Source: Fonticula alba ATCC 38817 | Taxonomy: Eukaryota > Protista > Nucleariida | Direction: 5' to 3' (one strand) | Assembly (NCBI GenBank): GCA_000388065.2 | Contig: KB932201.1 | DNA: 30,266 nt | In this document: piece by piece, positions 1,185-28,933 of the stretch | Position numbering within the stretch: the stretch's first letter is position 1 | Layout of the letters: each line of letters starts with the position of its first letter | Translations under genes and position numbers: made by a program | The notes under the pieces: model-generated | The model's database searches: none | What the model saw: the letters and a program-made list of their open reading frames with translations, nothing else | Told to the model about the DNA's origin: nothing

Positions 1185-1922
1185 CTAAAACCACAGCCCC
1201 CCCCCCTCCCCCCCCAAAAAAAAGACAGCACAGGGAGACGCACCTCAATCTGCCGGACGGTCAGGTCCAGGAAGGTCATCTGCGAGCGGACCTCGATGGC
1301 AGACTTCGGGCCGACGCAGCCCATCGTCGTGCCGAGGCCGCCATTGAGCTTAAGGACAACCAGCTTGTTGAGCATGGCACGCGCGGCATCGATGTTGTCG
1401 GTCGGCTGGGCAAGGACGTCGTATTGGAGGATCTGCGGTGCAGAGGGAGAGGGGCCACAGGAGAAGCGTGTCCGTTGGTGTTTGTGTGTGTGCCAGTATG
1501 CGCGGGGAGGAACGGGACAGAAGTCAGTGACCGGCAGTGGGGGGGGGGGGGACGGGCGGGACGGGAGGAGACTGTGACGGAAGGTCCCCGGCGGGCGTGT
1601 ACCTGATTCGGGCGTGGGGTGTGAATCTCCATCCAGTTGATGGCTCCCTTGCCGGAGGCACGCTCAGAGTGGTAGCGCGTGAAGAGCTCCGTGAAGCCCT
1701 CCATCTCCTGGGCAAAGGCCAGGCGCTTGGACTCGGGGGCCGTGGCGATCAGGACCTCCAGCTCCCGACGCATGGCTTCGGTCATGGCGGAGTACACCTG
1801 CGGGGGAGTGGGCGATGGAGAGATGACATCGGTGAGGGTGGCCGTGGAGGCGGACGCGGTGAGTGTCTCGATGGCAGGCGCGGGAGCGGGCTCCGGCTTG
1901 GGTGCCAGAGAGGGAGTGCCGG

Positions 1923-1953
<31 letters not shown>

Positions 1954-2061
1954 TGAGGGGGCGCCGCCTCGCCCAAGAGCGGCGTTCTTCTGCGAGATCA
2001 GCAGATTAGCAGCCGACTCGTCGTGAGGACTGACGGGGGCGGTGCTTGAGTTCTGTGACAT
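1..2061 (-). CDS. UGP1: UTP--glucose-1-phosphate uridylyltransferase (UDP-glucose pyrophosphorylase), 3'-partial
   Basis: Exons (minus): 2061-1603, 1432-1244, 1061-266, 46-<1, with GT-AG introns and consistent phases 0,0,1. Contains the hallmark motifs [64 protein letters not shown] and [10 protein letters not shown]; the spliced junction reads [21 protein letters not shown]. The start ATG (MSQNSS) is inferred. Confidence 0.97.
189..238. repeat. 8-nt tandem repeat (GAGAGGCA) x~6 in UGP intron 3
   Basis: Read directly from the sequence. Confidence 0.9.
1145..1183. repeat. (GT)19 microsatellite in UGP intron 2
   Basis: Read directly from the sequence. Confidence 0.95.
1924..1953 (-). repeat. 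CAG/CAA repeat encoding poly-Gln (Q10) in the UGP N-terminal extension
   Basis: Translates as [15 protein letters not shown] in the UGP exon 1 frame. Confidence 0.85.
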
Positions 2062-2345
2062 GGCGACTTTCGAAACGTGCTCGAGCGGATACGGAGCGGG
2101 AGGAGGGGAAAAGGGGAGGAAGGAGGTGGAGAGGTGTGCGCAAGGAGGGAGGGATGGGGGGCTGAGAGGACAGCCACTTGGGTGGATGCGCCTGGACCAA
2201 GCAGGTGGCGACCGGAAGAAGGGTAGAGGGAGGGAAAAGGCGTCGACAGACAGGTGTGCGGTGGGATGTGCCATCTGGCCACACCAAGGTTGCGTCTATA
2301 CCGCTGACATGTCGCGACATGGAGCGGGGAGGATGGGGGCGGGGG

Positions 2346-2530
2346 NNNNNNNNNNNNNNNNNNNNNNNNNNNNNNNNNNNNNNNNNNNNNNNNNNNNNNN
2401 NNNNNNNNNNNNNNNNNNNNNNNNNNNNNNNNNNNNNNNNNNNNNNNNNNNNNNNNNNNNNNNNNNNNNNNNNNNNNNNNNNNNNNNNNNNNNNNNNNNN
2501 NNNNNNNNNNNNNNNNNNNNNNNNNNNNNN
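2346..2530. other. Assembly gap (N run) flanked by G tracts
   Basis: N run. The other gaps are at 4654-4923, 7557-7749, 10698-10842, 19832-19867, 24912-24967, 25658-25992, 26986-27238 and 29688-29697; most abut G/C homopolymers or dinucleotide repeats. Confidence 1.
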
Positions 2531-4287
2531 GGGGGGGGGCGGGGGAGGGCACAAGGAGGCAAGCGCGCTGCTCAAGCAGAGGATGGCACACCCCACAGAG
2601 GCCGAGGCAGGCACCACTCCCGGAGGTGAGGGGAACCAAATGTGGACATGTGTGGATGGAGGGTGGAAACGCCTATCACACTGCCCGTCAGGGCTGGTCT
2701 CTGGTGAGACCCGAGGGACAGTTGGGAGACATAATCGCGACCCCCCCCCCCCCCGTCTGGGGGCGCTGTCCCCCACACATGCGAGGGAATCCCGCATCCT
2801 CGATCCAGGACAGGGCCGGTCCGCGAACGCAATTGTGAACACAGGTGTGGCTCAGGCGAAATGCCGACCAGGACGTGCTTGGGTCGGGTGAGCTCGCCGT
2901 ATTTCTCCTGAGGGGGCGGGCGCAAATAAACACGCCCCAGGACAACACCCATCATTCACATGAGTCTACTGCATCATGAGTGAGGGGCAGAGGCGCATGT
3001 GTGTCCCATATTTGCATCGAAGGGGGGGGGGGGGGGCAGGACCAACAAAATGGATTTTACAGGGAACACCCCCGGACTTCCGAACATGCACAACAGTCGC
3101 CCGGGCGGGTGTCGGGCAAAGACGCACCCGCACCCACGTCCACACCGACACACTTGTAAATACGCCGGCAAGGGGAGACAGCGGATGGAGATCACCACTA
3201 AAGGCACACAACCATTGGCAGGTGTCCACCGCCAGGTCCCCGGGGGGCCGGGGTGGAGCCGAGAGAAACCCATCACCGAACATTGAGACAGCTGTCGAGA
3301 AGGGCCTCCGGAAGGGGACCGCCGTGTCAATGTACACCTTTCCAAAGGGGGGGCTGGGCTGCTGGCGAACCATGCACGCCCCCGCCCCCCCCCCCCGCGG
3401 GCGAGTGAGAAATGCACGACCTGCGGGGGTGGGCAGGTGGGCGGGGAAAAAAACAACAATAGGCACGCCCAGGCCACCGAGGGGGGGGCGTATTACTGGC
3501 CCCCGCGGAAATTGGGGGGCGCCCAGCTCCCAACGGTGTGGCCCCTTTTAGGACGGGAAATGTTGCCCGCCACAGGCACCCTTTTCCCTGGCCTCTGCGC
3601 CGTGCCGTGTGCACAAGAGAGGTGGCAAGCGGGGCGCGGAACATCGATCTGCAGAAGGATCCCCCCGGCCCCCAGCTGGGAAGACTCGCTCACAGGAGGG
3701 CACACCATCCGGAGTGCAGGCCGATCGATCGGAGGAACTGACCGTGGTGGGTGCCTGGACATGAACTCAAAAGAGGGAGAGCCGGGCCAAATGCATGGTC
3801 ATGGCTGAAGAGGTCGGCAGAGGAAGGTGCCCCCCGCCCAGGGTACATACTCAAGGAAAAGGATGCCCGAGTGAGGGCATGAGTAAGAGGAGAAGGATAC
3901 GAGGCCGGACATGGTACAAGGCAGCTGGGTGGGCGAGGGAAAAAGACACAGGAGCCGTGGATGGAGGCCCGGAGGTCGGACCGGCCATTCTTCGGATATG
4001 GCGGCAGCGGCGGCGAAGGCAAAGGCAAGACCCGGAAGGAGTAGCCACTGTGGCAAAAAAGAAAAAAGAGGCAACAGCCCCACCGCAATGCCATGAGCGC
4101 CAATGGAGCCAGGGGCTCCTGAGAAGGAGGAGGGCTCCTTCGCAGAGGTGTCCCCCGAGACAGGCAGTGCCACAGGAGCCGGGGCACTGGTAGCGGTGGT
4201 CGTTGCGTGACGGCAGCAGAGACAGACACTGGAGGCAAAGAGCAAAAGCGCCATCCTTTCCGAGGGCGAAAGGCGCAGATGGCGATT

Positions 4288-6206: not shown

Positions 6207-6923
6207 ATGGCTGCAATTGCTCGCGCCCTGCAACGCACCATGCAGAGCTACGCCGAAGCCAATGCCCAGCATCCCCTGCTGGTCAAGGCCCTCACCTCTG
6301 GGGTGATGTTTGGCGCTGGCGATTGCATCGCCCAGACGTTGGTTCCCCCGCCGAAGGGCGATCCCCAGGTGTACGATTGGCGCCGGACACTGGCATTTGC
6401 CTCGTTTGGGCTGCTGCTAGCCGGGCCGACCTTCCACGTGTGGTATGGCCGCCTGGACCACCTGCCGAAGGCCATCGCGCGAGTGCGGAATGCCGCCACC
6501 CTACGCGCCCCGGCGGGTGCGGTCACTGCCACCACGGCCGGCCCATCCGGAGGGTCGCTGCTGGCGGCGCGCATGAGCCTCCTACGTCAGCCGGCCTCCC
6601 CGGCCGAAGTGGCCGCCGTGCCGACGCGCTATGTCATCGCCACCAAGGTCGCCTGCGACCAGTTGATCTTCGCCCCGGTTTTCCTTCCGGTTTTCGTTTT
6701 CTACACCGGCGCCTTCCGCGGTGGATCGGTGGCCGACTCGGCCGCCACCTTGCGGCAGACCTTCTGGCCGACCTACCGCATGGACTGGTGCGTCTGGCCC
6801 GCGGCGCAGACACTGAACTTCACCTTTGTCCCGGTTCCCCTGCAGCCGCTCATGGTGAATGTGGTCAGCCTCGGCTGGAACACCTTCCTCTCGTGGTTCA
6901 TCGGCGGCAAGCAACAGTCTTGA
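6207..6923 (+). CDS. Mpv17/PMP22 (SYM1-like) four-TM membrane protein, 238 aa
   Basis: Single ORF with the family motifs HPLLVKALTSGVMFGAGDCIAQ, YDWRRTLAFASFG, GPTFHVWY, TKVACDQLIFAP and WCVWPAAQTLNFTFVPVPLQPLMVNVVSLGWNTFLS. The subfamily (Mpv17, Mpv17L2 or PXMP2) cannot be resolved by eye. Confidence 0.95.
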   Translation: MAAIARALQRTMQSYAEANAQHPLLVKALTSGVMFGAGDCIAQTLVPPPKGDPQVYDWRRTLAFASFGLLLAGPTFHVWYGRLDHLPKAIARVRNAATLRAPAGAVTATTAGPSGGSLLAARMSLLRQPASPAEVAAVPTRYVIATKVACDQLIFAPVFLPVFVFYTGAFRGGSVADSAATLRQTFWPTYRMDWCVWPAAQTLNFTFVPVPLQPLMVNVVSLGWNTFLSWFIGGKQQS

Positions 6924-7829
6924 TGATGGCGCATGCGCGCATGCACACCGAGCATCTCTCGGTACACCCGTCCTTGTTTTCGCTCAGTCCCCCCTCCCTC
7001 CCGGCCGGTGTTTCCTGGCTGTTGCGGGCCTCCGCGCCCCGTGAGATGTCCCCCCCCCCCCCCCCGACCGGGAGTATGCGCGCCACGCCGCAACACCACA
7101 CACCACCACACACTGATACTTCTCCACCAGTGTGCCGTGGACGAGCCGTGTTTCCCCAGTTGCCATCCTTTCCCTGGGACACGTCACGTGATGTAGCCAC
7201 AGCCCCCATTACCAATATTATTCCCTTGCCCTTTGTGCGGTGCCATGTTTCCCCCCCAACCGCGCTTGTGTCTCCCCGCCCGTGCCCCCTCCTCGTTGAG
7301 TCCTTTTTCTTGTCGACCACGGTCCCCAGGGTGAACAGAGGGAGAGAGCGAGGGCGAGGGCGAGGGCGATAGACGCGGGATAGACGGCCGCCCCGGGGGT
7401 GCGTGGGGCAAGTATGGGCGTGGCCCGGGTGCTTGTCGCCCAGGCGCCGCCTGGAAAAGGCACGGAGAGAGAGCACCGAACCGGCAAAGCGTCGCCGGCT
7501 CGTCTTGCGAGGTTATTTTTGGATTGCTGGCTCTTGCTCGCCCCCCCCCCCCCCCCNNNNNNNNNNNNNNNNNNNNNNNNNNNNNNNNNNNNNNNNNNNN
7601 NNNNNNNNNNNNNNNNNNNNNNNNNNNNNNNNNNNNNNNNNNNNNNNNNNNNNNNNNNNNNNNNNNNNNNNNNNNNNNNNNNNNNNNNNNNNNNNNNNNN
7701 NNNNNNNNNNNNNNNNNNNNNNNNNNNNNNNNNNNNNNNNNNNNNNNNNCCTCTCCCTCTCCCCTCCTCCTCCACAGGCCGCTTGCTCCTTCCCCTCCCC
7801 CACACTTGACTTTTCCCTCCCGGTCCGCC

Positions 7830-9733
7830 ATGGGTCGCCGGTCACCGGTATCGCCGGGAGCTGGCCCGCGCCCCCATCGGGCCGCTAGCGTCATGGGCAT
7901 CCTTCTGTTGCTTGCACTGGCGACAATGGCCGCAATGATTGGCCCAGTCACGGCTGCCTTCTCGGGCTCGACTTCTGCCTCCTCGCCGGATGCCCCCTCG
8001 GGGCCTGATTCCGGCTCCATCCCCGCCGATTCATCGGCCTCATCTTCGGCTCCGGCTTCCTCGCCGGGCTCTTCTTCGGGCTCGGCTCCGGCCTCTTCGT
8101 CCGGGTCCGTCTCCACCTCGACTTCGGGCTCGATGTCCACCTCAACCTCGGGCTCGATGTCCACCTCAACCTCGGGCTCGATGTCCACCTCAACCTCGGG
8201 CTCGGTGTCCACTTCAACTTCGGACTCGGCCTCCTCCTCTTCCTCCGGGAGTCCTCCTCCGAGCCAGGACCTTGCCTGGGCGGACTTCCACATCTCCGAG
8301 GAGCTAAAGAAGCCCCTTTACCATATCACCGACATGCCGCTGATCATTCACGCGGTGGGCATCCCCTTCAATGCCTTCCCTCAGCAGTGCGCGCCCCCCC
8401 CCCCCCTCCGACTCCCATCCTTGCTTCCTCCTTGGCCCTTCTGCTAATCCCCCTCGTCCGGCTTGCACTCACCGTGGGCTTCCCTTCGCCCTTTCCCCCA
8501 CACAGAGAGTGCCCGGATGCCTCTCTCACTTGCGCGGCGGCGGTCTTCCTTAAGATCGAACAAATCGAGTGCCCGAACCAAAAGGCCGACCCTGTGGCTC
8601 TCCTGTCCGGGGAGGCGGCCACCTGCAGCCCGATCATCTTCCACCTCTTCGGTCTGCGCTATTGCCAGCCATTGGGCGAGTAGTGCGTGGTCTTTGCTCT
8701 TTTCTCACCTTTTTTTTCCTCCACGTACATGTGTCCATGTGTATTGGACCCCTTCTCACATTCCCCCCCCCCCCCCTCACATGCGCGCGTGTGCTCGCCA
8801 CAGCTACCGGTGCATTGTCCACAAGTCGGATCTTCACTCGCCAGACACCCCGACTCCGACCCCGCCGACTCCGACCCCGCCGACAGCCGCGACGATGCTT
8901 GCCACCTCCCCTCCGCCCAGCACTCAGGCTGCCTGTCTGCCGGGCGCCAACGACTGTGTGCTGACTCGCGCTGCTACCCTTCGGATTGTTGTCCCCGCGT
9001 ACGTCAACGTCCCTCCTTCTCTCGACCTCTTTCTCCCTTCACTTGGACACTCACACCCGGGCTCCCCTCCTTGCTCTCGCTGCTTCTCGCGGCTGGCGCA
9101 TACATCGGGACAGTCATGACGTGCCCCGGCACATTGGCAAGTTCCTCATCTCGGCTGCCGTGTCGCCGGATCCCACCCAGTTGCCTGATCCGAATAACCC
9201 CTTCCCTCCCAAGGGCGAGCCGATGGATGAGCGCATCGCCACCTTCACGGCCAACTTTGTGGATGTCTACAACTTCCCGGTCGAGTTTGAGTACTTTGTG
9301 GAGAAGTGCGTGGCAGCCGGGCACAGCAGCACCCCCCTACTCTCCGCTCTTGCGGCATTCTTCCTGTTCTCGTTCACTAACACCCCCCCCCCCACACACA
9401 CACACACACATCCACACATCCACACACATCCACTTTATGGCCTGGCTCTCTCCGGTCCGCCTGCCCGACTCTTTCCCCCTTGCAGCCCCCGGTCGTATGA
9501 CGCAATCATCCGCATCACCAACATCGTTTCTTGGATTGGTATCGCGGTCAGCTTCATTCCTCTCATCTTCTTTGTCCTTGTCTTGTGCGTACCTTGCCAT
9601 TGCCGGTTTCGAGGCCTGCCTGTTTGTTTGTTCGTTCGTTGGCGCCTCGCCTTGTGCTCACTCGCTGCCCATTACGTCGCGTACAAAACCCCGTAGCTAT
9701 TTCGACGTTCGGCTGCCGCTCGGGCTGGAATGA
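7830..9733 (+). CDS. Uncharacterised type I membrane protein (signal peptide, Ser/Thr-rich stalk-like region, Cys-containing ectodomain, C-terminal TM, short tail), about 418 aa
   Basis: Exons 7830-8386, 8506-8682, 8804-8998, 9114-9305, 9486-9584, 9697-9733; all five introns are GT-AG and phase 2, and the frame joins cleanly. Signal-like MGILLLLALATMAAMIGPVTA-A (alternative ATG at 7893), 8 ectodomain Cys, TM ITNIVSWIGIAVSFIPLIFFVLVF, tail YFDVRLPLGLE*. Confidence 0.85.
8112..8228 (+). repeat. Coding 24-nt minisatellite x~5 encoding STSTSGS(M/V)
   Basis: Unit TCCACCTCAACCTCGGGCTCGATG, in frame with the membrane-protein CDS. Confidence 0.95.

Positions 9734-10466: not shown

Positions 10467-10522
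<56 letters not shown>
10467..10522. repeat. C56 homopolymer (G56 on minus; G-quadruplex potential)
   Basis: Read directly; the length may be inexact in the assembly. Confidence 0.9.
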
Positions 10523-11114: not shown

Positions 11115-14100
11115 ATGGCCCAGGAGCCGGCGGGTCCGCCGGCGAACGAATCGCTCGCCAGCGATGGTAACGACGCCCCGACGCCCAACGCGTCCGGCGC
11201 CTCGCCCCCCTCGCGTGGGAGTCCCCCGGAACTTGCCAAACTCTTCCTCGGTGGCAGCGGCAATGCGAGCCCCTCGCCGCAGCAGCCTCTCATGCTGAAG
11301 TTTTCCATTAGCCCGAGTTCCTCGGCTTCGGCTTCCCCGCACGTGCCCTCAAGTAGCGCACTTCCCTCCGGCCCGTCGCCCTCCTTGCCGGGTACATCCG
11401 CCACTTGCTGTGCTCTTCGTCGCGTCTCCTCCTCCCCATTAACTCGACGTCCTCTCTCTCTCTCTCTGGCCAAAGCCTCCGCAACCACCGCGCCCAGCTC
11501 GACGGAAACTTCGCCCGCCCTGGCCCCGACGCGGATTCTCTCCTCGCGTGCCGCCCGAGCGCAGGCTCGCGAGGCCATGCTCTTGGCTGCAGCCGGTCCG
11601 GCCCCTCGACAGGCCACTCCCATCCTTGCGGACAGCGGGGCCCCTTTGCCGGTGGTTGTCCCGGCAGAACGGGCCTCTTCCCCGGTGACCGCTCCGGACT
11701 CCGGGGCTGCCTCTGCCCCCGAGCCGGCACCCGGCCCGGCTTCCATGCCGGAGCACCCCACTCGAGCTACCCCGCCGGCCCAGACCCTTCCCGTGGCAGA
11801 AGCGGCCAATGCCCCCGCTGCGGTGGTCTCCGTGACGAATGTCGCCTCCCGGCCGGGAACTCCTCGTGCCACACGCCGGCGTATCATCCTGCCAGACCCC
11901 ACCTCGCCGCGGAATGCCTCTCCCACGCGTGCGTCCTTCCGGCTACGCCACCAGCGCCCGGGTAGCGATGCCGCCAATGGGGCCACTTCTGCCGACACCC
12001 CCGGGCCGGGCCCAGGTGGCATCTCCTCAATGGCTGGCGGGTCTGCCGGACCTGCTGCCCCGTCGGCAATGGCGGCCGGGGCGCCTGCCGCAACCACCGG
12101 CCCGGGTGCCGAGGTGGCCGCCCCTTTCTCCCCTCACATGTCCCTCTCATCTTCGGGCTTGAGTTTGCCCGTGGGGGGGGCCTCGGCCTCGGTGGCCTTT
12201 TCGGCGATCGCCCGGCTGGCTGGCCTGGACTCGGCCACCGGGCCGGCTGGCTCCATCGATCCCTCCACGCTTAATACCACTGAACAGCTGGCCACCGCAC
12301 TGAAGGCCATCTCCTCCGGGTCCTTTAGTACGGTGCCCGATCCGCATGTTGTAGCCACCACGGTGGCGGCGGCCATGGCATGCGCCGGGTCCGGGATTGG
12401 CGACTCGGCCGCCGCCGCCACCCCTGCCGGCGGGGTTGACCTCTTCCATCCGGCGCCGCTGAATTCCGTGGGTCGGAATGATCTTCGCCGGCTGCGCCAG
12501 CTGTGCGAGTCGCCGCAGTTGATTGGCTCCTTCTTGAGCACATTGTCCCTGGACCCGACTGTTGACCCGGCGCTTCGGATCTACCGTGACAGTGCCGAGG
12601 TCCGGCGAATCCTGGCGGAGAATGCCCCATCCGACACCTCGCGGGCGCTTGCGGCAGCGGACACCACTGCCGACGTGGCTGGTGCCCGGCGGCGCACCAG
12701 CAGCCGGGCCACCTCCGCTCTCATCCAGACACCGGCATCTTCCGACTCGGACTCCGACGATCACCATGTACATGCCTCGCGTCGTTCCTGCCTCTCCACC
12801 TGCCCCCACCCCACCCCACCCCACCCGAGCTTGTCCATTTGTTTGGCGCATGCCCGCTGCCTGCGCCGAACTTTTCTAACGCCACTCGGTCCATGTGGCC
12901 CTTTGCCGGTGGTAGTCCATGAATAATGAGTATTGTGACTGCTGCCGTGGTCCGGGGACATTCCTTTGTTGTGACCGCTGTCCCCGGTCTTTCCACTTTG
13001 TGTGTGCCAACCCGCCAGTCGAGCAAAGCGAAATCCCCGAGGGAAACTGGTATTGCAATGCCTGCCTCGCCGAAATGGTACACATGCCGGAGCCAAGGGC
13101 ACACCCATTCAGCATGACACCATGCTAATTTTCTCCTCCTCCCCCCCCCCCTCCTTCCCCCTCCTTCGTCGGTAGTTCCCTTTGCCAAAGCAACCACGCC
13201 CCGACCGCTTTGGCTTCATCAAGATGATCGAGCGAATTTACCCGCAAAACCCGACACCCTACTCGCTGCCAGACGGCATTAAGTTCTTCTACTGCGGTGG
13301 TTCGTCGCTCCATCAGGCCCATTTGTGTTTGCTCTTTTCTCTCTTTCTCTCTTCCTTTTTTGCTGGACGCCTCTTCGACGCACCCGTGCATTCGGCCTGA
13401 CCTTGGACCGCGCGCCCACCCGCCTCCCGTTGCCGAATCATCCCACAGTCAATGTGGACCCCTTGAGCGGGGCCTTCCGGGATGACTATGACCGGAAGGG
13501 GAATTTCCGGTGCGTGTCCTGCTCTTCCTCCCGGCTGCTGGCTCCTCCCCTCCTTGCAAATACCCTTTCGCGCGCAGATTTTCTCACTCTCTCTCACACA
13601 CACACACACACACGCGCGCGATTGCAAACGCGCACATACGCTCCTCCCGGCTGCCCATGCTCTCCCCCCCTTCCATTTCCGCCTCGTTCTTCCTTCTCTC
13701 CTTCTCTCGCCCCCTCGCCCCCTCGCTCTCTTTCTCGATCTTTGGCAGAAATGGCGAGTGGATTTCGCCAGATGCATCGTATAACAACACAATTGTCGTC
13801 GGGTCGGCGACACCTGCCGGGCAATCGGCTGCCCGCGGGTCCGGCTACCTGACCACCTACTCCAGCCGGTCCTACGATGCGGACCCCTCGTCCGGAGCGC
13901 CGTCATTGCTACATGTGGCGCATCCTTCGCCCGCGCTGCCATCTACTGGCGACCGGCACCCCGAGCAGCCGGATCCCAGCTCGCCGGAACTGGCCCCCGG
14001 GGCCGGGGACGGCTCTTCAGACTCGGGCCTGTCGTCCAGCGGTGGCCTCTCCTCCGCTGCCACCACCACCTACATCCAGAGCCTGACCGGGGCGGCGTCA

Positions 14101-15258
14101 CACAGTGGGAATGTCGGCCTGGCCTTTGGGCCCTCATATACCCGGTCGGCCGGGTATCCATGCTACGCATGTCGGGATTTCCGGCCGGACCGCTTGCATT
14201 TGGTTTGCGATGCCTGCGGTAGCCGCTGGCATGCCGAGTGTCTGCCCCCGTTGGCAACCCTGCCCTCTGACACGACGCGCTGGCGCTGTCCACTCCATGC
14301 AGCCACGGTGCTCTTGGCGTCGGAGGATTCCGGCGGCCACGCCGGCGGCGCCGGATCGTCCGTGGTCGTGCACAACACCAGCACCTATCGACCTCGCAAC
14401 CGCCTTTGTCCCCCGATCGAGGGGTTCATCGTGGTCCGGGGCGGCGGCAGTGGTGCCTCTGCCGCCGGGACGGGCGTCGGTCGAGCAGGCGCCGCACGCG
14501 AGCGTGCCATCTCTCGCTGGTCACTTCCCTCCGGGGGGCCGGTGGTGGCGGCTGGCTTGGCCGCACGGGCTGGTCTCGGCGGCGGGTGCACCATCGGCGA
14601 GCCGGCCTATGGACTGGAGATCATTCAAGATCTTCCGGCTGCCACGGCGGCCATGTTTGACGGCCTCGATCCTGGGCCCCTGGCCTTCTATAATCCCACT
14701 GGTGGGGGGAGCTCCGGGCGGCAACGGCGCCGTGGCTCCGGTCTGGCCACCCAGCACCTTACCTACTCGCAGGATCTGCGCGTGCACCGACTGGCCGAGA
14801 GTGACATCCGCATGGCCTTCTTGGAGACATTGCTGCGACGGTACGTGGCCATCCTTGTCGTCCTGGCCTTTCTCCCTCCTGGCTATTCCGCCAATCACCC
14901 CCGGCACGCGCTGACATCCTCCCCGCCCCTTTGTCGCTCTCCCTCTCGCATGCTTTTCAGTGAATCCGCGCGCCAGGAAATCCACTCGTCTCTGGGCCGG
15001 GCAAAGCGCCCGGCCACCCAGGACCTCGGGTGTTTGGTTGTGCCGAGGGCCGTTTTCCGGTTGTACGAGCAAGCCAGAAAACGCCAACGCACCAGAGCCG
15101 CCGATTTGGTTGCCGGAGAGGCGCCCGTCGCATCTCCACCCGGTTCAAATACCGACGGGGGGGAAGACATCCTAGAGTCCCTGCTGGAGCTTCACGCAAG
15201 CGGCAACCCGTCCCCTCCCTCACCAAACCAAGAACCAGCTGGCGCCCCGGACGCGTAG
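11115..15258 (+). CDS. RCO1: Two-PHD-finger Rco1/Cph1-Cph2/PHF12-like subunit of the Rpd3S/Sin3B HDAC complex, about 1129 aa
   Basis: Exons 11115-12767, 12916-13077, 13176-13299, 13449-13509, 13749-14840, 14961-15258; phases are consistent. PHD1 NNEYCDCCRGPGTFLCCDRCPRSFHFVCANPP...WYCNAC closely follows the recalled Rco1/Cph PHD1 pattern and is followed by NPTPYSLPDGIKFFYCGV (NPxxFxLP-type motif). PHD2 CYAC...CDACGSRWHAECL...WRCPLH has the family-typical CPLH end, and RLAESDIRMAFL matches the R.PE..I.LDF motif. A probable 5'UTR intron lies at 10962-11038. Confidence 0.85.
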
Positions 15259-15334
15259 TGGCACCTCCTTCCCCCCACGTGCGAGGTCCAGCTTCAACGC
15301 CAACTCCCCCGACTGTCGAACAATATACACAAAC

Positions 15335-15340
<6 letters not shown>

Positions 15341-15400
<60 letters not shown>
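15341..15400. repeat. (AC)30 microsatellite extending into an alternating purine-pyrimidine tract
   Basis: Read directly; lies between the Rco1-like stop and the VOC gene. Confidence 0.95.
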
Positions 15401-15403
<3 letters not shown>

Positions 15404-15737: not shown

Positions 15738-16019
15738 ATGGCCTTCCAGGCGGCGCGCTCTACTCTTCGGCACGTTATGCTTCTCTCCCGCGACGTGCCG
15801 ACGTCTGTGCATTTCTACCAATCGGTTCTCGGGCTGCGGGTGGTTGCCGAGACCCGGGAAGCTGGCGGTTGGGCCGAACTCGACGCTGGCTCCTCAACCG
15901 GTGGGCCGGGCATCAGCATCGTCATCTCGGCAGCCGAAAAGTGCGTGGATGATCTCTATGCCTGAAGCTCTATGCCCGCCAAGCTGACAGTCCTGTGTGT
16001 CCGTGTGTGTGTGTGTGTG

Positions 16020-16058
<39 letters not shown>

Positions 16059-16423
16059 ATATTTACACTTGTCCATGTGCGTGTGTTGACGCATCTCCGC
16101 CCTCCAGCGAGGCTGCCGCTACTGCCGGGTATAGCACCTTTCTCAACTTCACCGTGCCAGACATGGACCATGCAGTTCAACAGGCTATGATGCTTGGCGG
16201 TCGGATGGATGGTCCCATCAAGTATCCAATCACCGGTCGAGTGCGTATTCCCCCTTTCCTCGGGCCCAGCACCTCACGCCTCTAATGTTGGCTTTGTGCT
16301 TCCCCCTTACCTCCCCCCTCGCCGAACCCCAAGGTGGCCGCGATTCGCTCGCCCGATGGACACATGATTGGCCTTTTTGAGCCAGCCTCGAGTGCCATCA
16401 CCCAACAACTTGACAGGCAGTAG
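15738..16423 (+). CDS. VOC (glyoxalase/bleomycin-resistance fold) family protein, 141 aa
   Basis: Exons 15738-15940, 16108-16240, 16334-16423. LRHVMLLSRDVPTSVHFYQSVLGLRV...WAELD...GYSTFLNFTVPDMDHAVQQAMMLGGRMDGPIKYPITGRVAAIRSPDGHMIGLFEP fits the paired beta-alpha-beta-beta-beta VOC pattern. Confidence 0.92.
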
Positions 16424-16719
16424 ATGCCGACCGGCTTGGCGTCAGCCTGGAATCCACCCGCTGCCCACCTTCCACACGAGTGCATCCTGCCTGTTGCTTG
16501 CGTAAACACGTGTCCCTGCTGAGGCGTGAAAGGAGGAGGGGAGTGTATTAATGTTGGAAGGGGAGAAAACAAGGGGAGGGCTGAAGAAGGGGGGGTGGGA
16601 GGTGCGCGCAAGCCGCCGGGGCAAGGACAAGAGGGGCGGAGCACAGACACCCAGAAAGCGAAGATGCGAGCAGGCGACAGCAGGGAAGGATGACCACCTG
16701 CGGCCTATGGGCCTCATGC

Positions 16720-19700
16720 TCAGTCCAGGATCTCCATCAGGCCGAGCGGGCGACCGGCCAGAGAAAATTGGCCAATGTGGCCGGACGAATGTTCCCGGAC
16801 CCAGAGGAGCCAAAGGACCAGGGTCTGGAAAATGTTGGCCGAGCCAATCGGCGTGGGCCACACCCGACCAGCCACCACCAGAACATAGTGCGGGGCCAGG
16901 ACACGCTGCTTGGTGGCCAGAGACCCGGCGGTGGTGGTGGAGGATTTGCCCGAGCGGCTGTACCGGGCAAAATGCTCGCCCCCGGCCGGGGCCGTGTGCT
17001 GCGACGACAGCTGCGAGGCCGAGACACCATGCTGGAAGGAGTGACCACCATTGGACAAGGTGGAATAGGCACCGAGACCCGGATAACCGGTCCCGTGGTT
17101 GAGAGACTGCCGGCCGGAAGTGCCATACATCTGGGACTGCTGCTGAGGGTGATGCTGCTGGTACAGGTCTTGCGGCTGGTAGGGGCTGCCGGAGCCGGCG
17201 GTGTAGCCAGCGGCCGCCGGCGTCGGGGCCGACTCGGTCGTGGCCTTCGATGACAGGGGGACCACAAAGCGACGGACCATGAAGATACGCGCCGGCGAGG
17301 GAAGGACCGAGGGGGTGCCGGCATCTGGCGTGTCAAGCCCGGCCGCACGAGCCGCCTGCTGCTGCTGCTGCCCGGCTTCCGGGAGCAAAGCCGACACCGA
17401 AGTGCTGCACAGCCCGGCCGGAGTGGCCGCGGCACTGAGAGTGTGCGCAACAATGTCATGCGGGGTCCAGCTGTCCGGAGTGACGAATCGCGCCGAGAAG
17501 CCGAGACGCTTCTCAACCACAGTGGGCAGTTGCGGCTGCGACTGTGTGCCCCCGAAGCCGACGCCACCAAAGGAGGAGCCCGAGCCGGCGACTGACGAAC
17601 CACCGAAGCTTGATCCGGCAGTGGAGGAACCGCCGCCGAAGGTCGATCCAGCGGTGGAACCACCGCCGAAGGTCGACCCGGCACCGGTGAAGCCGGAGGC
17701 ATTGACCGAATTGAAGCCGGAGCCGGTGGATGCGGTGGTGGCCATGGTCGGCGACCGACCGAGCAGACCGCCGCCGGCCACGCCGAGAAGCGGGGCCGGG
17801 GCGGTGGCCGAGCCAAGCGCCGGCACCGAGGCCGAGGCCGAGGCCGAGTAGCCGTGCACAGCCAGCGGCGGGAGCGTGTCGTCGATGAGCGTGGCGAAGA
17901 TGTGAAGGACAATCTGGGGAAAGGGACATGGATGGTGAGTGGGGGCGGGGGGGGGGGGGGAGGGGGGGCTGATCAGGAAGGCGCAAAGCAGGATGGGACT
18001 AATGGCAGGCAGCCAGGAAGCCGTGAGCACGCACTTCCGCATCGGAGGGGAACCACTCGGGCGGCGTCTCAATGCTGGTACCCTGGCGACCACGACCGGC
18101 CGAAGAGTCACCGGCATCGGATCCGGCAGACGAGCCAAACCAAGAGGCAATGCCACTGCCAAAGGAGGCGGACAAAAGCTGGCTGCGTTGGTTGGTGCCG
18201 CCGGACGTGCCGCCGGTAGCAGCGCTAGCGGTTGCAATTGACGAGTGGAAATTCCCGGCACCAGGCGCCAGGTCGGCCGCCTGGCCCGGACGCCGAGGCG
18301 AGTCATGGTGGATGAACTCCGACAAAACGCTGCCCTGAGCCATGCGAAGGATCCGATCGACCACATACTTGCGGTAGGCCGTGCGGGCGAGGGCCGCCGA
18401 CCGGGCCTTCGGGTTGCCACCGCCACCGCGAGAGCCGCCGCCGCTGCCGGGGAGTCGCGTCCCCTCGGCACCGAGCCCATCACCAATCCCGGCGTCCGAG
18501 CCAGCCGCATAGAGATCCATGAACTTGCTGAAGGCCGGGAGAGATGCATGGGCACCGAACCCCACGGCCAGGTAACGCTCGATGGTCAGGCGGTCCTGCA
18601 TCCAGGGCTGCGCATAGTAGGGAGCCAAATCGGCGAAACGGAGCTGGAGCAAATCCTCCGAGCGCTCGGGCAGGGGCGGAAGCAGAGCCGATCGGATGGC
18701 AGCCACGGCGGCCTGGTGGCCGGGGCTGGGCCGGGACCCGGGCGCAATGGCCAGGTGGCCGAGACCCAGGTGGAGGAAAATGGAATCAATCTCGGCAATA
18801 CGCTTTGCCAGTGGGATGAAGGCATATTCGGCCAGCCAGCGGCGCATGCGCTGTGTCCAAATGGGCAGCTGGGTATCGACTCCGGACAGGGAAAGCCATT
18901 CGGAGGAAAGCTGCGGGTCCAGGGCGGCGGTCGGAAGGCAGGAGGCCAGCGAACGGATGGCCTGCGACAGGCGCCGGGCGGCCACCTGCGGGTCGGTGTT
19001 GTCCTCCTGCAGAATGAGCGACAGGTAGTCCGTGGACTCGAGGCCATCGATGGCAGGGTCGCGCGCGGCGGCGGCGGCCTGCGCCGCGGCGGCGGCCTGC
19101 GCCGCATCACGCTCCCCGGTCGGCAGGCTATCCTCGCGTGTGGAGGTGCGATATTGCGACACCGGCTGGAAGAGGGGGAAGAAGCTGAGACGCCCGGCAG
19201 GGGTGGCCCCGGTGGGCGAGTCACCCGGGTGATGACCCTCCATGCCGCCCAGCGGGAGGGAACCGGCGTCCCCCGGGACCGGGCCACCGGAGAAGGTGTG
19301 CTCGGCTCCGGCGGCAAAGAGGGACGACTGCAAGGCCGAATGGCTGGGTGGCAGGAGACCCGGGCCGGAGCCGGCGACCGCCATCGACGGGCGGCGCTGG
19401 AAGGAGGCGCCCGGCGCCGGGGCGGCGGCCGCGGTCGACAGGACGCCCGCCCGGCTGAGTGCCGGCAGGAGCTGTGAACCCCCGAGAAGGGTGCCCTCAA
19501 GCAGGGAGTAGCCAGTGGGCGAATTGAGGTCCAGCAGGGCAGGAGCACCGGCGACGGCAGCACCGGCGACGGCAGCACCGGCACCGGCAGCACCGGCATC
19601 GGTGGCCGTCCGACCAGGAAGCAGGCCAGTGCTGAGCAGTCCGCGATGATCGAGCCCAGCAGCGGTGGAGGTGGCCGGCGTGGCCTGGTCAGTTGCGCGC

Positions 19701-20780
19701 ATGCGCAGCGGCGGGGCCACAGCCGACAGAGCAAAGTCATCCTCGCCCGAGGGATTCAGCAGGAAGAGAATGGCCGACAGGGAGGCATTCAAAGCGAAGT
19801 ACGCCATTGGCAGGTAAACTGGGGGGGGGGGNNNNNNNNNNNNNNNNNNNNNNNNNNNNNNNNNNNNGGCAGAGGAGGGAAGAGCAGCTTCGGGTGAGGA
19901 GGGGAAGATATCCGAGAAGGGGAGGGGGGGCAAAGGGGAGGCAGAGACAGGGCTATGGGATTCGGCACGCACCGACATAGTCGAAGGTGTCGGGCTGGAT
20001 GCCGGACCGGATGGCCAGACGTTCGCAGAAGTGCCGCCAGCCCAGAGACAGGTAGACTGCCAGCAGGGCCAGGGCCACAAGGGCATTGGAGAAGAAAACC
20101 CAAGGGGAGGGTCGGTGCGAGAGGTACTGCGACCGGAGGCGACGCAGGCGTTCAAGCAGAGCGGCCAGCCCGGTCGCCGGGGCCGAGCGCGTGCCCTTGG
20201 TCGCGAAGCCGGCACTACGGCCTGCGCCAGGGCGCGCAGGCCCGATGCCACTGTTCCCGAGGGAGGCCGCCGCCGCTGGGGGAAGATATGTGGTGTCTTG
20301 TGGGAGAGTGCGAGCAAGGGGCTGCAGGTGGGGTTGTGAGGGGGGCTGCAGCTGGGTCTGCTGGGTCCAGGCATGTGGGGCGGGTGCCGTGGAACGCCCC
20401 AAAGGGCCGAGGCTATCGCCGGCGAGGGCCGCGGCAGAGAGGCCGAACGACCCGGCGGCCTGGGCGCCGGGGATGGTGGAAGAGCCGGCTGCCGGCCCCG
20501 GGGCCGGTGCCGACGATCCTGTGGCCAGGGTCGCCGACGCGGAACCAGCACGCGCACCACGGAACAGGAGCCCGCCGGCCGCGGGAGCCGGGGTGCCAAA
20601 GAGGGCAGAAAAGCCCAGGTTGGCTGCCGGGCGCCGGGCTTCCCCGCCAGGAGTGGCCGGCAGGAGAGAGGCATACGGGTCGGCCGAATGAAGGAGACTG
20701 CTGGAGAGCGGAACCGGGCCGGTGGCGTCCGCGCCTGGCGGGGCCCCGCCGGGGCGGGTCGACAACGGCGCGAAGGACAT
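16720..20780 (-). CDS. TMEM209: TMEM209-like (Pom34/PNET1-related) nuclear-envelope transmembrane protein, about 1261 aa, with low-complexity and FG-repeat insertions
   Basis: Exons (minus) 20780-19973, 19818-18035, 17913-16720. Two N-terminal hydrophobic segments are followed by blocks colinear with recalled human TMEM209: WTQRMRRWLAEYAFIPLAKRI ([21 protein letters not shown]), KYVVDRILRMAQGSVLSEF (EYLFERIKELSQGGCMSSF), FPSDAEIVLHIFATLIDDTLPP ([22 protein letters not shown]) and PHYVLVVAGRVWPTPIGSANIFQTLVLWL ([29 protein letters not shown]). The start ATG is inferred, and intron 1 contains a small gap. Confidence 0.9.
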
Positions 20781-21696
20781 CGAGCTACGCGCGCGGTGGG
20801 CCGACGAGGGGACAGAGGCCGGGGGACAGAGGGAGGGACAGGGAGGGGGGGGGAGGAGCGTGCGACGGCCGGTCGTCGAGAGGGAGGCAAAGAGGGGCGA
20901 GGGGAAGGGGAGCGGCGTGGGGCGGCGGTTGCTTCCCCACCCCGGCCTCCAGGCCAGCGAGGCTGAGGCCTTTTGTCCGTGCGAGCAAAGGGGGAAATGC
21001 AGGACGCGGGACGGGGACATGGCGATCCGGCGCCCGTGGGCCAGCCCTGGCCCGGCGAAACTAGACACAAATGCGCGGAGGACGGTGGCGAGCGCATGCC
21101 CGCGGCCCCATGGTCCCTGGTGCCCCCCCCCCTCCCCTCCGTCCCGCGAACCACTCGCCCGGGCCCAGGAGGAGGTGTCTCAAGACGAGGCGCCGCTCTC
21201 CACTGGCACCACACGAGCTACCTCTCTCTCCGGCCGCGCTTGCCGGGACCCCGTGCGCCGGGGGCCCTCGTGCGGTGCTGCCGTTACATGTGGACTGCTG
21301 CACCGGGTCCTGGTGAGATCTCCTCCGGCCATGGGGCTCACTCAGAGCCGAAGACAAACCCGCATGCATGGAGAAATAGCCGAGCTAAGGCACAGCGCAG
21401 GCTGACTGGAGGACGGTGACTCGGGGAGAGAGCACACAATACAGACACACACACACACATACACGCACACACGCAGGCGCTCGCGCTCACGCGCCGAAGC
21501 AATGGATGTCTGGGGGCGAGGGAGGCAGACACGGGCAGGGCGCGGGGGGCAAGGCGACGAGGGGGCGCGCGCGGGACACCGTAGTCGAGCGGGTGGAGAG
21601 ATCGACCATGTGATGACGCGTCCCAACGCATCGGAACACCATTCCGACATGCCCACGTTTTGGGATACCAGGCAGCCGGCCTGCCCACCCGCTGGC

Positions 21697-26264: not shown

Positions 26265-28933
26265 ATGTTCTCCATCTCGCGGTCGATTGCCCGGGGCGTC
26301 GCCCGCCCGGGCGTGTCCTCGGCCCTCTTCCGTTCGGGCTCTGCCACTGCCTTCCGGTACGTCCTCCCGTTGAAGCGCCGGATTTGCCGCGCCATGCCCG
26401 GCTCTGACCGCCCATCACCATCATGCCGTTCAATCCATCCTTGACAGCGCGTACTCTTCTCTCGACGTGTCGGCCACTCTGAAGACCAACGTCGACACCA
26501 CTTCGGACGTCTTTGCCGAGAATGATACTCGCATGCGCTCCCTCGTGGCCGATCTCAAGGCCAAGGTGGCCCAGTTTTCCCTCGGTGTGTCTTTCCTCGC
26601 CGTCCCCTGTCTTGTCCTCTTCCAATGCCCCTCTCCCCTCCTCTCCAACAGGGGGGCGGGGGATGGCGCACACGCACACACACACACGCGCACACGTACA
26701 CGCACACACTTGGCCGAGTATGTACACTGACTCGGTCCCGCCTGCTTGCCTTTGTTGTCTTGCTTCCCTGTCTTTGCGTCTCGACCAGGTGGCGGGGAGA
26801 CTTCCCGCGCTCGTCATACCTCCCGCGGCAAGCTCCTCCCTCGCGAGCGTGTTCGCCAGCTCCTGGACCCGGGCTCGCCCTTCCTGGAGTTCTCCCAGTT
26901 CGCCGGCTACCAAATGTATCCAGATGATGTTCCCTGCGCTGGCATCATCACCGGTATCGGCCGGATCAACGGGTGCGCCCCTCACNNNNNNNNNNNNNNN
27001 NNNNNNNNNNNNNNNNNNNNNNNNNNNNNNNNNNNNNNNNNNNNNNNNNNNNNNNNNNNNNNNNNNNNNNNNNNNNNNNNNNNNNNNNNNNNNNNNNNNN
27101 NNNNNNNNNNNNNNNNNNNNNNNNNNNNNNNNNNNNNNNNNNNNNNNNNNNNNNNNNNNNNNNNNNNNNNNNNNNNNNNNNNNNNNNNNNNNNNNNNNNN
27201 NNNNNNNNNNNNNNNNNNNNNNNNNNNNNNNNNNNNNNCACACACGCACACACACGCACACGCACACACATTTACGCCGATCCCCCTTTGGGATACCTTC
27301 GCGACCAACCTCACTCACATTCGCCCCTCGCGCATGTCCACAGTCGACTCCGGTGGTGCCAACCTCCCCAACCAGGCGGACGTCTTCCCCGACAAGGAGC
27401 ACTTCGGCCGGATTTTCTACAACCAGGCTACCATGTCCGCGGCCGGCATTCCGCAGATTGCCGTGGTCATGGGCTCCTGCACGGCCGGTGGTGCGTACGT
27501 CCCGGCGATGGCCGACGAGTCGATCATCGTCGCCAACCAGGGCACCATCTTCCTGGGCGGTCCGCCGCTGGTGCGCGCGGCCACTGGTGAGGTGGTCTCC
27601 GCCGAGGATCTGGGCGGTGCCGACGTGCACACCCGCGTGTCTGGTGTGGCCGACCACATGGCCGTGGACGATGCCCACGCGCTGGCCCTCACGCGCCGGC
27701 TCTTCCTGAACCTGAACCAGCGCCCGGGGGCGGACATTCGCACCCGGCTGCCGGTGCGCGAGCCGATCTACAACCCCGAGGAGATGTACGGCATTGTCGG
27801 CGACAACCTGCGCCGGCCGTTCGACGTGCGCGAGGTCATCGCCCGCATTGTCGATGGCTCGGAGTTCGACGAGTTCAAGGCCCGGTATGGCACCACCCTG
27901 GTGACTGGCTTTGCTCACCTCCATGGCTACCCGGTCGGTATTGTGGCCAACAATGGCATCCTCTTCGGCGAGTCGGCCGTCAAGGGTGCCCACTTCATCG
28001 AGCTCTGCGCCCAGCGCAAGATCCCCCTCATCTTCCTTCAGAACATCACCGGTACGCAGACGAGGACAAGGCAACTGGTGTCGGTCATGTCCCGGAGGGA
28101 GAGACCCCTGCCCCGCCTCGCCCCGCGCCCCGCCAGGAGACGCATCTATGCAGCCACCACTGACCGTGAGCATTTACTTCCCCCTCCCCCCCTCCCCCCC
28201 CCCCTGTCCTCCCTGGCCGGGCACACTTTCCAGGCTTCATGGTTGGCCAGTCCTACGAGCATGGCGGTATCGCCAAGCACGGTGCCAAGCTGGTGAATGC
28301 GGTGGCTTGCGCGAATGTGCCGAAGTTCACCGTGGTCATCGGTGGCAGCTTCGGTGCCGGCAACTACGGCATGTGCGGCCGTGCTTACGGCCCTCGGCAG
28401 ATGTGGATGTGGCCGAACTCTCGCATTTCGGTCATGGGTGGCGAGCAGGCCGCTGGCGTGTTGACCACCGTGGCCCGCGACCAAGCCGAGCGCTCTGGCA
28501 AGGAGTTCTCCACCGAGCGCGAGCGCTCCATCGCCGAGCCGATCCTTGCCCAGTACGAGCATGAGGGCCATCCTTACTTCTCCAGTGCCCGGTACGCATG
28601 GGCGAACCTTTCCCCCCCAAAAGCCTCCGCCTCTCTGTTGCCGGAATATTGCCATGCCCCCTGTGTCTCTTTTTTTTTCTTTCCCCGCCCGAGAGCCGCC
28701 CATCAGGAGGCAGGGAAGGGGATGCTGCCCCTATGTCGATGTGTCTCCGCCTTGACTAACCCCCTTCGGCTTGGCCCCTCACCCTGTGCCCAACACTGCA
28801 CCTTCGCAGCCTCTGGGACGATGGCATCATCGACCCGGTGGACACCCGCACCGTGCTTGGCCTTGGTCTGAGCGCCGCCATGAACCAGCCCTTCGACAAG
28901 GAGGATACCCGCTTCGGTGTCTTCCGCATGTAA
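26265..28933 (+). CDS. MCCC2: Methylcrotonoyl-CoA carboxylase beta subunit, mitochondrial (one internal exon hidden in an N gap)
   Basis: Exons 26265-26356, 26448-26584, 26789-26972, [missing], 27344-28051, 28234-28591, 28810-28933. Arg/Ser-rich presequence [15 protein letters not shown]; motifs [88 protein letters not shown]; C-terminus FGVFRM*. Confidence 0.98.

Follow-up and report, generated by a model that had tools for sequence, protein, structure and literature searches.

A block of phenylalanine-glycine motifs inside a lineage-specific insertion of a diverged TMEM209-family protein from Fonticula alba

Introduction

TMEM209 is the fourth transmembrane (TM) nucleoporin to be described in human cells; it interacts with Nup210, and both of its termini face the cytoplasm or nucleoplasm (PMC12967149). 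It is located in the inner ring of the pore, where its C-terminal domain (residues 325-561) links two NUP62-58-54 subcomplexes, as seen from inside the channel, and it has the properties of a linker nucleoporin (bioRxiv 10.64898/2026.02.20.707084). The orthologues found at the pore are PNET1 in plants (PMC12967149), NPP-28 in Caenorhabditis elegans (PMC13692120) and LAP59 in trypanosomes (PMC11018031), and experiments in human, plant, worm and trypanosome place the family at the nuclear pore (PMC12967149, PMC11018031, PMC13692120, bioRxiv 10.64898/2026.02.20.707084). Phenylalanine-glycine (FG) repeats are not described for human TMEM209, PNET1, NPP-28 or LAP59 in the sections of these papers on which we draw (PMC12967149, PMC11018031, PMC13692120, bioRxiv 10.64898/2026.02.20.707084). 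Here, we compare these proteins with the product of a minus-strand gene of Fonticula alba, a member of Rotosphaerida within Opisthokonta (assembly GCA_000388065.2; bioRxiv 10.1101/2023.12.07.570557). The gene lies in a stretch of 30,266 nucleotides (nt) of contig KB932201.1, called the window below, and a window position plus 4,030,699 gives the coordinate in the KB932201.1 record. Profile comparisons identify the product as a very diverged member of the TMEM209 family, and a block with five FG motifs lies within one of its insertions.

Comparison with the TMEM209 family

All searches and folds of the F. alba protein were made on separate exon pieces. For PF09786, the TMEM209 family in Pfam, the gathering score is 27.3 bits. 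Two matches below this score were obtained: exon 2 corresponds to profile positions 320-427 with 11.5 bits, and the end of exon 3 corresponds to positions 494-571 with 16.6 bits (E 0.004). A phmmer search of 1.84e9 (1.84 billion) protein representatives gave P0001 as the sole match (E 1e-3), and the annotated protein of F. alba itself was not among the matches of this search. P0001 is a PF09786 protein (2e-29), and the pairwise BLASTP comparison with it gives 1e-9. Alignment A1 contains 13 relatives of P0001; compared with it by hhalign, exon 2 reaches a probability of 96.3% (E 1.8e-9) and the end of exon 3 an E of 1e-4. Alignment A2, made with MAFFT and including exon 3, agrees with this family placement. 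The hydropathy profile also shows the pair of N-terminal TM helices that is characteristic of the family, with a short lumenal loop between them. A third TM helix, which would put the FG block in the lumen, was considered at an Ala/Gly/Val repeat (19532-19588, hydropathy 1.62) and judged unlikely, this stretch being of low complexity.

Taken together, these comparisons give good support, at the level of remote homology and below Pfam's own threshold, for assigning the gene as a very diverged F. alba orthologue of TMEM209 (PNET1/LAP59/NPP-28; PF09786, IPR019176). An initial annotation of this DNA, made from the sequence alone, had proposed the same family, and the two-TM architecture together with three collinear remote-homology matches bears this out. 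It had also called the protein 'Pom34-type', a label that is contested, as the relevant sections of two papers report no structural homology between Pom34 and TMEM209/LAP59 (PMC12967149, PMC11018031). None of the F. alba exon pieces gives a Pom34-type Pfam match, and the likeness to yeast Pom34 is that of a two-TM pore membrane protein; the partner of Pom34 is Pom152, the counterpart of Nup210. The same annotation had argued that an FG-bearing member would independently support TMEM209 as a true nucleoporin. Since this status is already established experimentally in human, plant, worm and trypanosome, that argument is outdated.

The overall architecture of the F. alba protein follows that of human TMEM209 (NET31), with two near-N-terminal TM helices, a disordered middle region, a C-terminal PF09786 globular domain and termini that are inferred to be on the pore side. 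However, the human protein has 561 residues, whereas the F. alba protein is swollen to 1261 residues by low-complexity insertions. It has an N-terminal extension of ~225 residues, and its C-terminal domain contains large insertions in loops, the FG block being part of one of them. The similarity between the two proteins is seen by profile methods only. The extension, which is rich in Ala, Gly, Pro and Ser and contains ALFGTP and GSFGLS, is encoded by exon 1 together with TM helix 1. Arabidopsis PNET1, C. elegans NPP-28 and Trypanosoma brucei LAP59 share the architecture and the family and are tied to the pore membrane ring; the passages on them that we consulted report no FG block. The nearest relatives found are P0001-P0015, which share the blocks that flank the insertion, LFCTFxDExLPS, FSGKHF and the C-terminal strands and helix. 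Searches seeded with P0001 and with A1 returned one clade of 14 proteins and P0015 only. A word search with the conserved region of exon 2 among candidates of 321-1020 residues gave no match, nor did the A1 profile when searched by sequence against the PDB. A Foldseek comparison of the P0001 model with the PDB gave none at E 0.001 or better. With exon 2, no relatives came from the genome-contig or metagenome-contig collections. The sole metagenome contig with a match to the end of exon 3 is bacterial and was matched outside any gene; it was rejected as a chance match.

The NCBI annotation (GCA_000388065.2) contains a minus-strand product of 1261 residues that ends at window position 16720, which is the same length as that of the model read from the sequence. 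No Pfam match is on record for this product, and an exact look-up of the long open reading frame (ORF) across exon 3 returned no record. The product is probably carried as an uncharacterised protein in public annotation, and the PF09786 profile evidence thus assigns a family here to an F. alba product lacking one. We consider it highly improbable that the gene is not a TMEM209 homologue, or that its model is wrong through an unrecognised intron or a false join across the assembly gap (36 N, 19832-19867) inside intron 1, either of which would make the pore context spurious. Such an error could account for the low scores of the exon pieces (11.5 and 16.6 against 27.3 bits) and for the annotated product having no Pfam match; long open frames are common at 65% GC, and the gap does interrupt intron 1. 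However, it would leave unexplained why three independent matches are collinear with the profile and accompanied by a fitting two-TM architecture, why TM1 and TM2 flank the gap in the expected order, and why an independent annotation arrives at the same product length. The exon-like composition and codon-position behaviour of the FG block, described below, also argue against it.

Sequence and site of the FG block

Read on the minus strand in the reading frame of exon 3, positions 17548-17676 encode a 43-residue peptide that carries FGG five times and agrees exactly with the block first reported. The GSGFNSVNASGFTG segment said to precede it is present as well. Two Gly-Phe sites, GSGFNS and ASGFTG, are located upstream of this core. 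Across the larger block (17730-17548), the Phe-to-Phe spacings are 8, 7, 10, 11, 12 and 5 residues. The surroundings are almost free of charge, with one charged residue among the 117 residues from LAVHGY to PTVV. Thus, the block shows what is typical of FG nucleoporins, several FG motifs joined by hydrophilic low-charge spacers, with a repeat count at the very low end. A Gln-rich spacer had been described after the block; directly after it there is only TQSQPQ, and the true QQQQQ run is found ~60 residues further on (17356-17370).

The block had been placed between the conserved segments DDTLPP and FSARFV. The first of these anchors holds, as DDTLPP is the LDENLPS block of the family and the insertion follows right after it. 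The equivalence of FSARFV to the FSGKHF block of the family is ambiguous, because both hhalign and MAFFT align the family FSGKHFV block to GGEHFARY (16960-16983), ~170 residues beyond FSARFV. With the FSGKHFV block at GGEHFARY, the insertion is ~290 residues long. FSARFV may be a real intermediate landmark, like the extra FSGRF element of P0015. Whichever downstream anchor holds, the alignments put the FG block inside a lineage-specific insertion.

The corresponding loop, before FSGKHF, has nine residues in P0001-P0014, the 14 relatives with a readable loop. The 15 fetched relatives contain between 0 and 4 FG per protein, and never more than two in any 43 residues. Several relatives have a single S-x-FG motif in the disordered loop that follows the HPASF block (A1 ~383-390; P0001 ~176-185), and F. 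alba has no FG there. AlphaFold2 (AF2) models the C-terminal domain of P0001 with a predicted local distance difference test (pLDDT) value of ~90; confidence is lower in the loop between the helix 268-283 and the helix 295-298, which is where the insertion point falls. When exon 3 alone was folded by AF2 with A2, a shallow alignment that makes the result a proxy for disorder, the FG block had pLDDT values of 34-38 and no secondary structure. Values of 29-45 extend along nearly the entire insertion, and the terminal strands and helix of the family are reproduced. From the two TM helices upstream of the block and the topology of human TMEM209 (PMC12967149), it follows by homology that the FG block would face the cytoplasm/nucleoplasm, and with it the pore, and not the lumen, as had been proposed.

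Along the ~290-residue insertion, Phe 'stickers' occupy the first half and Tyr the second. The disordered region could therefore have a function other than that of an FG repeat, either through Phe/Tyr stickers on Gly/Ser/Gln spacers, in self-association or scaffold contacts, or as a Ser/Thr-rich linker regulated by phosphorylation as in PNET1 and NPP-28. The Tyr/Gln/Gly/Ser-rich stretch at 17053-17208, which is part of the same insertion, and the linker-nucleoporin properties of human TMEM209 are in keeping with this explanation. PNET1 and NPP-28 are indeed regulated through phosphorylation of a disordered region; however, this region is the middle one and not a loop of the C-terminal domain (PMC12967149, PMC13692120). 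As no specific motif was identified in the F. alba stretch either, we regard a function of this kind as improbable.

Origin and probable maintenance of the FG block

Tandem Repeats Finder (TRF) detects a diverged repeat beneath the FG block. Its 30-nt period indicates that the block is a diverged tandem duplication of a ~10-residue FGG-containing unit and not the result of five independent events. Among the three clearest units, 15 of 23 position differences are at third codon positions (binomial p ~0.002), a count that comes from three short units of 33 codons and from comparisons that are not independent. Expressed as codon differences, 14 are synonymous and five change the amino acid. The predominance of synonymous third-position changes argues that this is the frame in which the block is read, and also that selection of some kind has probably kept the encoded peptide much as it was after duplication. 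The composition of the block is also exon-like, with a C-skew near 0 and a G+C content at third codon positions (GC3) of ~0.78, compared with ~50% C in the introns and untranslated regions (UTRs). An intron hidden within the block was considered as well and was rejected on the composition and the codon-position evidence.

The clustering of the motifs was compared with chance by shuffling. At least five FG within 43 residues occurred in 5e-5 of the trials when the residues of the last exon were shuffled, and in 2e-4 when the ~290-residue insertion alone was shuffled; thus, the cluster is not an effect of composition. Within the 61-residue block itself, which contains 7 Phe and 22 Gly, a count of five FG is only marginally unusual (p ~0.05). 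A six-frame scan of the 30 kb window found one other 43-residue stretch with three FG, in a frame that differs from that of the long Ser-rich ORF there (7524-8447). FGG does not occur in ~2,900 residues from nearby ORFs that are probably coding, some of them Ser/Ala-rich and of low complexity. The initial annotation had drawn attention to further FG dipeptides in the protein (ALFGTP, GSFGLS, ASFGSG and SWFGSS). These exist, and VGFGAH can be added, but their number is at chance level. The whole protein has 10 FG where 5.7 are expected, and the five FG per 39 Phe outside the block match the composition expectation, so the scattered dipeptides carry no weight.

The repeat origin of the block leads directly to an alternative, which is that it is a neutral low-complexity expansion. 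Slippage of the 30-nt FGG-encoding unit in a tolerant surface loop would have produced a segment with no transport role, at most a flexible spacer. This explanation is quite possible, if somewhat short of even odds. Besides the tandem repeat found by TRF, further repeat-derived tracts occur in the gene (19544-19597, 19063-19105 and 17819-17848), the motifs are few and, given the composition of the 61 residues, marginally clustered, and the nine-residue loop of the relatives implies that nothing is required at this site. However, an unconstrained peptide is not expected to have unit differences that cluster at synonymous positions. Slippage in a tolerant loop likewise gives no reason for all seven Phe to be kept, with regular spacing, in an almost chargeless stretch, for a second loop insertion of the same domain to contain two FG, or for FGG to be absent from the neighbouring low-complexity ORFs.

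Gene structure and surrounding sequence

The features of the gene are listed in Table 1. The sense strand of its introns and UTRs (17914-18034, 19819-19972, 16575-16710 and 20850-20940) is extremely C-rich, with ~50% C and 9% A. Peaks of C-skew coincide with the UTRs as well as with both introns, and the sign of the GC- and AT-skew tracks gene direction across the window.

Table 1. Window coordinates of the TMEM209-family gene of F. alba and of the segments discussed in the text
Feature	Position	Strand	Details
Coding region, TMEM209-family gene	16720..20780	-	three exons, 1261 codons + stop; 808+1784+1191 nt
Exon 1	19973..20780	-	ATG at 20780; GTGCGT donor after 19973, phase 1
TM helix 1	20043..20099	-	VFFSNALVALALLAVYLSL; best 19-residue hydropathy window, Kyte-Doolittle 2.2
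Intron 1	19819..19972	-	GTGCGT donor, C-run + CAG acceptor; C 50%, G 14%; C-skew peak
Exon 2	18035..19818	-	GC3 0.76; TM helix 2, disordered middle region, first half of C-terminal domain
TM helix 2	19757..19813	-	LPMAYFALNASLSAILFLL; Kyte-Doolittle 1.79; ~21 residues after TM1
C-terminal domain, first conserved part	18311..18925	-	hhalign 96.3%; phmmer to P0001; PF09786 320-427
Two FG motifs (ASFGSG, SWFGSS)	18134..18166	-	in ~85-residue Ser/Gly-rich insertion, preceding domain loop; exon 2 residues 552, 560
Intron 2	17914..18034	-	121 nt; GTGCGT donor, CCCCAG acceptor, phase 0; C 52%, G 16%; C-skew peak
Exon 3	16723-17913	-	stop codon follows; read within ORF 16720-18555
Conserved helix end IVLHIFATLIDDTLPP	17866..17913	-	family ILLxLFCTFxDExLPS; A2, D and L invariant; helix 268-283 of P0001 AF2 model
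Lineage-specific low-complexity insertion, ~290 residues	16996..17865	-	FG block inside; hhalign, MAFFT
FG block	17548..17730	-	seven Phe in 61 residues; five FGG within core 17548-17676
Tandem repeat beneath FG block	17599-17687	-	TRF: 30-nt period, 2.8 copies, 74% matches; diverged
FSARFV	17482..17499	-	equivalence to family block ambiguous; resembles FSGRF of P0015
Tyr/Gln/Gly/Ser-rich stretch	17053..17208	-	same insertion as FG block; 6 Tyr, 9 Gln, 2 charged in 52 residues
C-terminal domain, conserved end (strands + helix)	16723..16995	-	PF09786 494-571; hhalign E 1e-4; A2; secondary structure as P0001 (AF2)

The next gene downstream of the TMEM209-like gene is a small gene of the glyoxalase/VOC family in the opposite orientation (15738-16423, +; 141 residues), whose 686-nt span contains a (TG)n microsatellite. 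It is preceded by a gene for a PHD-finger protein (11115-15258, +; 1101 residues) that consists largely of Ser/Ala/Pro-rich low-complexity sequence. An annotated gene for 418 residues (7830-9733, +) has no Pfam match; a 24-nt tandem repeat at 8112-8228 (4.9 copies, 93% matches) reads as a Ser/Thr/Gly-rich tract in one frame and, from the complementary strand, as an acidic Glu/Val/Asp repeat. A single-exon gene at 6207-6923 (+) encodes a membrane protein of the Mpv17/PMP22 family with 238 residues, identical to the annotated product. At ~26746-28871 (+), exons for a carboxyltransferase like the beta subunit of methylcrotonoyl-CoA carboxylase were recognised by eye from the ORF translations, with N gaps and (CA)n repeats between them.

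The first part of the window contains exons of UDP-glucose pyrophosphorylase (UGPase) at 138-1034 and 1276-2274 (-; annotated with 496 residues, PF01704), a gene with several N gaps. Compared with the PDB, these exons match eukaryotic UGPases best (E ~1e-98), and the Leishmania and Trypanosoma enzymes reach only 1e-44. The public record has a gap of 1905 N immediately before the window, and the first bases of the window (1 to ~700) recur upstream of this gap (1177-1889 of the retrieved contig segment L005, in which the gap is 1890-3794), which suggests a duplicated gap flank inside the UGPase gene, likely an assembly artefact. The window has nine N gaps, and long homopolymer C/G runs of up to 56 nt and many (CA)n/(TG)n microsatellites occur both between and within genes (10467-10522, 15327-15401, 15994-16057 and others). 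Rfam and tRNA scans of the whole window gave no match.

Discussion

Two kinds of FG nucleoporin can be compared with the F. alba protein. POM121, with a single TM helix, carries far more repeats in a long FG region at its C-terminus, whereas the F. alba protein has two TM helices and its FG motifs belong to a loop within a folded domain. No Pfam scan of the gene matched the POM121 family. If the proposed role holds, the likeness would be that a TM segment tethers FG motifs to the pore membrane, which is analogy and not homology. Nup62, Nup58 and Nup54 (Nsp1, Nup49 and Nup57 in yeast) have FG spacers that are uncharged and rich in Ser, Thr, Gly and Ala, the cohesive low-charge flavour that is also seen in the F. 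alba block. Unlike the F. alba protein, these nucleoporins are soluble, anchored by coiled coils and equipped with far more repeats, and the Pfam FG models find no match in the F. alba segment.

It is secure that the gene is the F. alba orthologue of TMEM209 and that its FG block is a translated, disordered, nearly uncharged insertion of Ser, Thr, Gly and Ala that is derived from a repeat and faces the pore. Going further, the block may join the FG meshwork and offer weak sites for transport receptors, as a small extra element of the barrier; arguing from homology with the human domain, we give this a probability of about 0.45. In human TMEM209 the domain borders the channel, next to the sites where the main FG nucleoporins are anchored, so an uncharged F. 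alba segment with 5-7 Phe would be well placed for contact with the FG meshwork. Tandem duplication of a ~10-residue FGG unit made the block within a loop insertion of the C-terminal domain. In the mechanism that we propose, this domain would dock two NUP62-58-54 subcomplexes at the channel-facing side of the inner ring, as its human counterpart does, and the insertion would then dangle close to where the main channel FG domains are anchored. In that position it could form a small cohesive FG element, with 5-7 Phe per copy, to which transport receptors could bind weakly and which would also touch the FG meshwork. The block would then be analogous in function to the FG region of vertebrate POM121 without being homologous to it.

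Several observations weigh against a transport role, besides the chance-level FG count outside the two loop insertions and the small sample behind the codon-position count. First, FG domains typically hold tens of FG, and here there are five (seven Phe) only. Pfam scans of 17500-17760 and 17548-17730 at E up to 10 gave no family, Nucleoporin_FG included, although the bias/composition filter of HMMER may mask such matches; a search of the FG segment against the PDB by sequence gave no match. Second, low-complexity tracts derived from repeats abound in the proteins of F. alba, and the protein described here has others (AGAAV x3.6, SASASAS, a Gly run and QQQQQ). Third, an orthologue from a related species was not found in the protein, genome-contig or metagenome-contig collections searched. 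This result, like the absent Nucleoporin_FG match, also favours a neutral expansion. Fourth, no single exon piece attains the PF09786 gathering score of 27.3 bits, and the family rests in Pfam on two collinear matches below it. Finally, docking to the NUP62 complex is known for human TMEM209 only, through AlphaFold 3 modelling and cross-links (bioRxiv 10.64898/2026.02.20.707084).

A broader proposal is that F. alba TMEM209, and perhaps nucleariid TMEM209 generally, has become an FG nucleoporin anchored in the membrane, by the grafting of FG repeats into loops of the domain that docks the Nup62 complex, as an independent origin of the role of POM121. It would then show that simple repeat expansion can give FG domains to scaffold or membrane nucleoporins. 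We consider this unlikely. TMEM209 has only recently been placed in the pore, as a membrane-anchored linker of the inner ring that bridges two NUP62 complexes. If the FG block is neutral low complexity, it is no more than what a genome rich in repeats commonly produces. Its small size makes expression and mutation of the segment (Phe to Ser) practicable. If the barrier role of the block is true, FG motifs inserted in the TMEM209 domain would provide a compact test case for the origin of FG domains and the evolutionary mobility of their anchor points.

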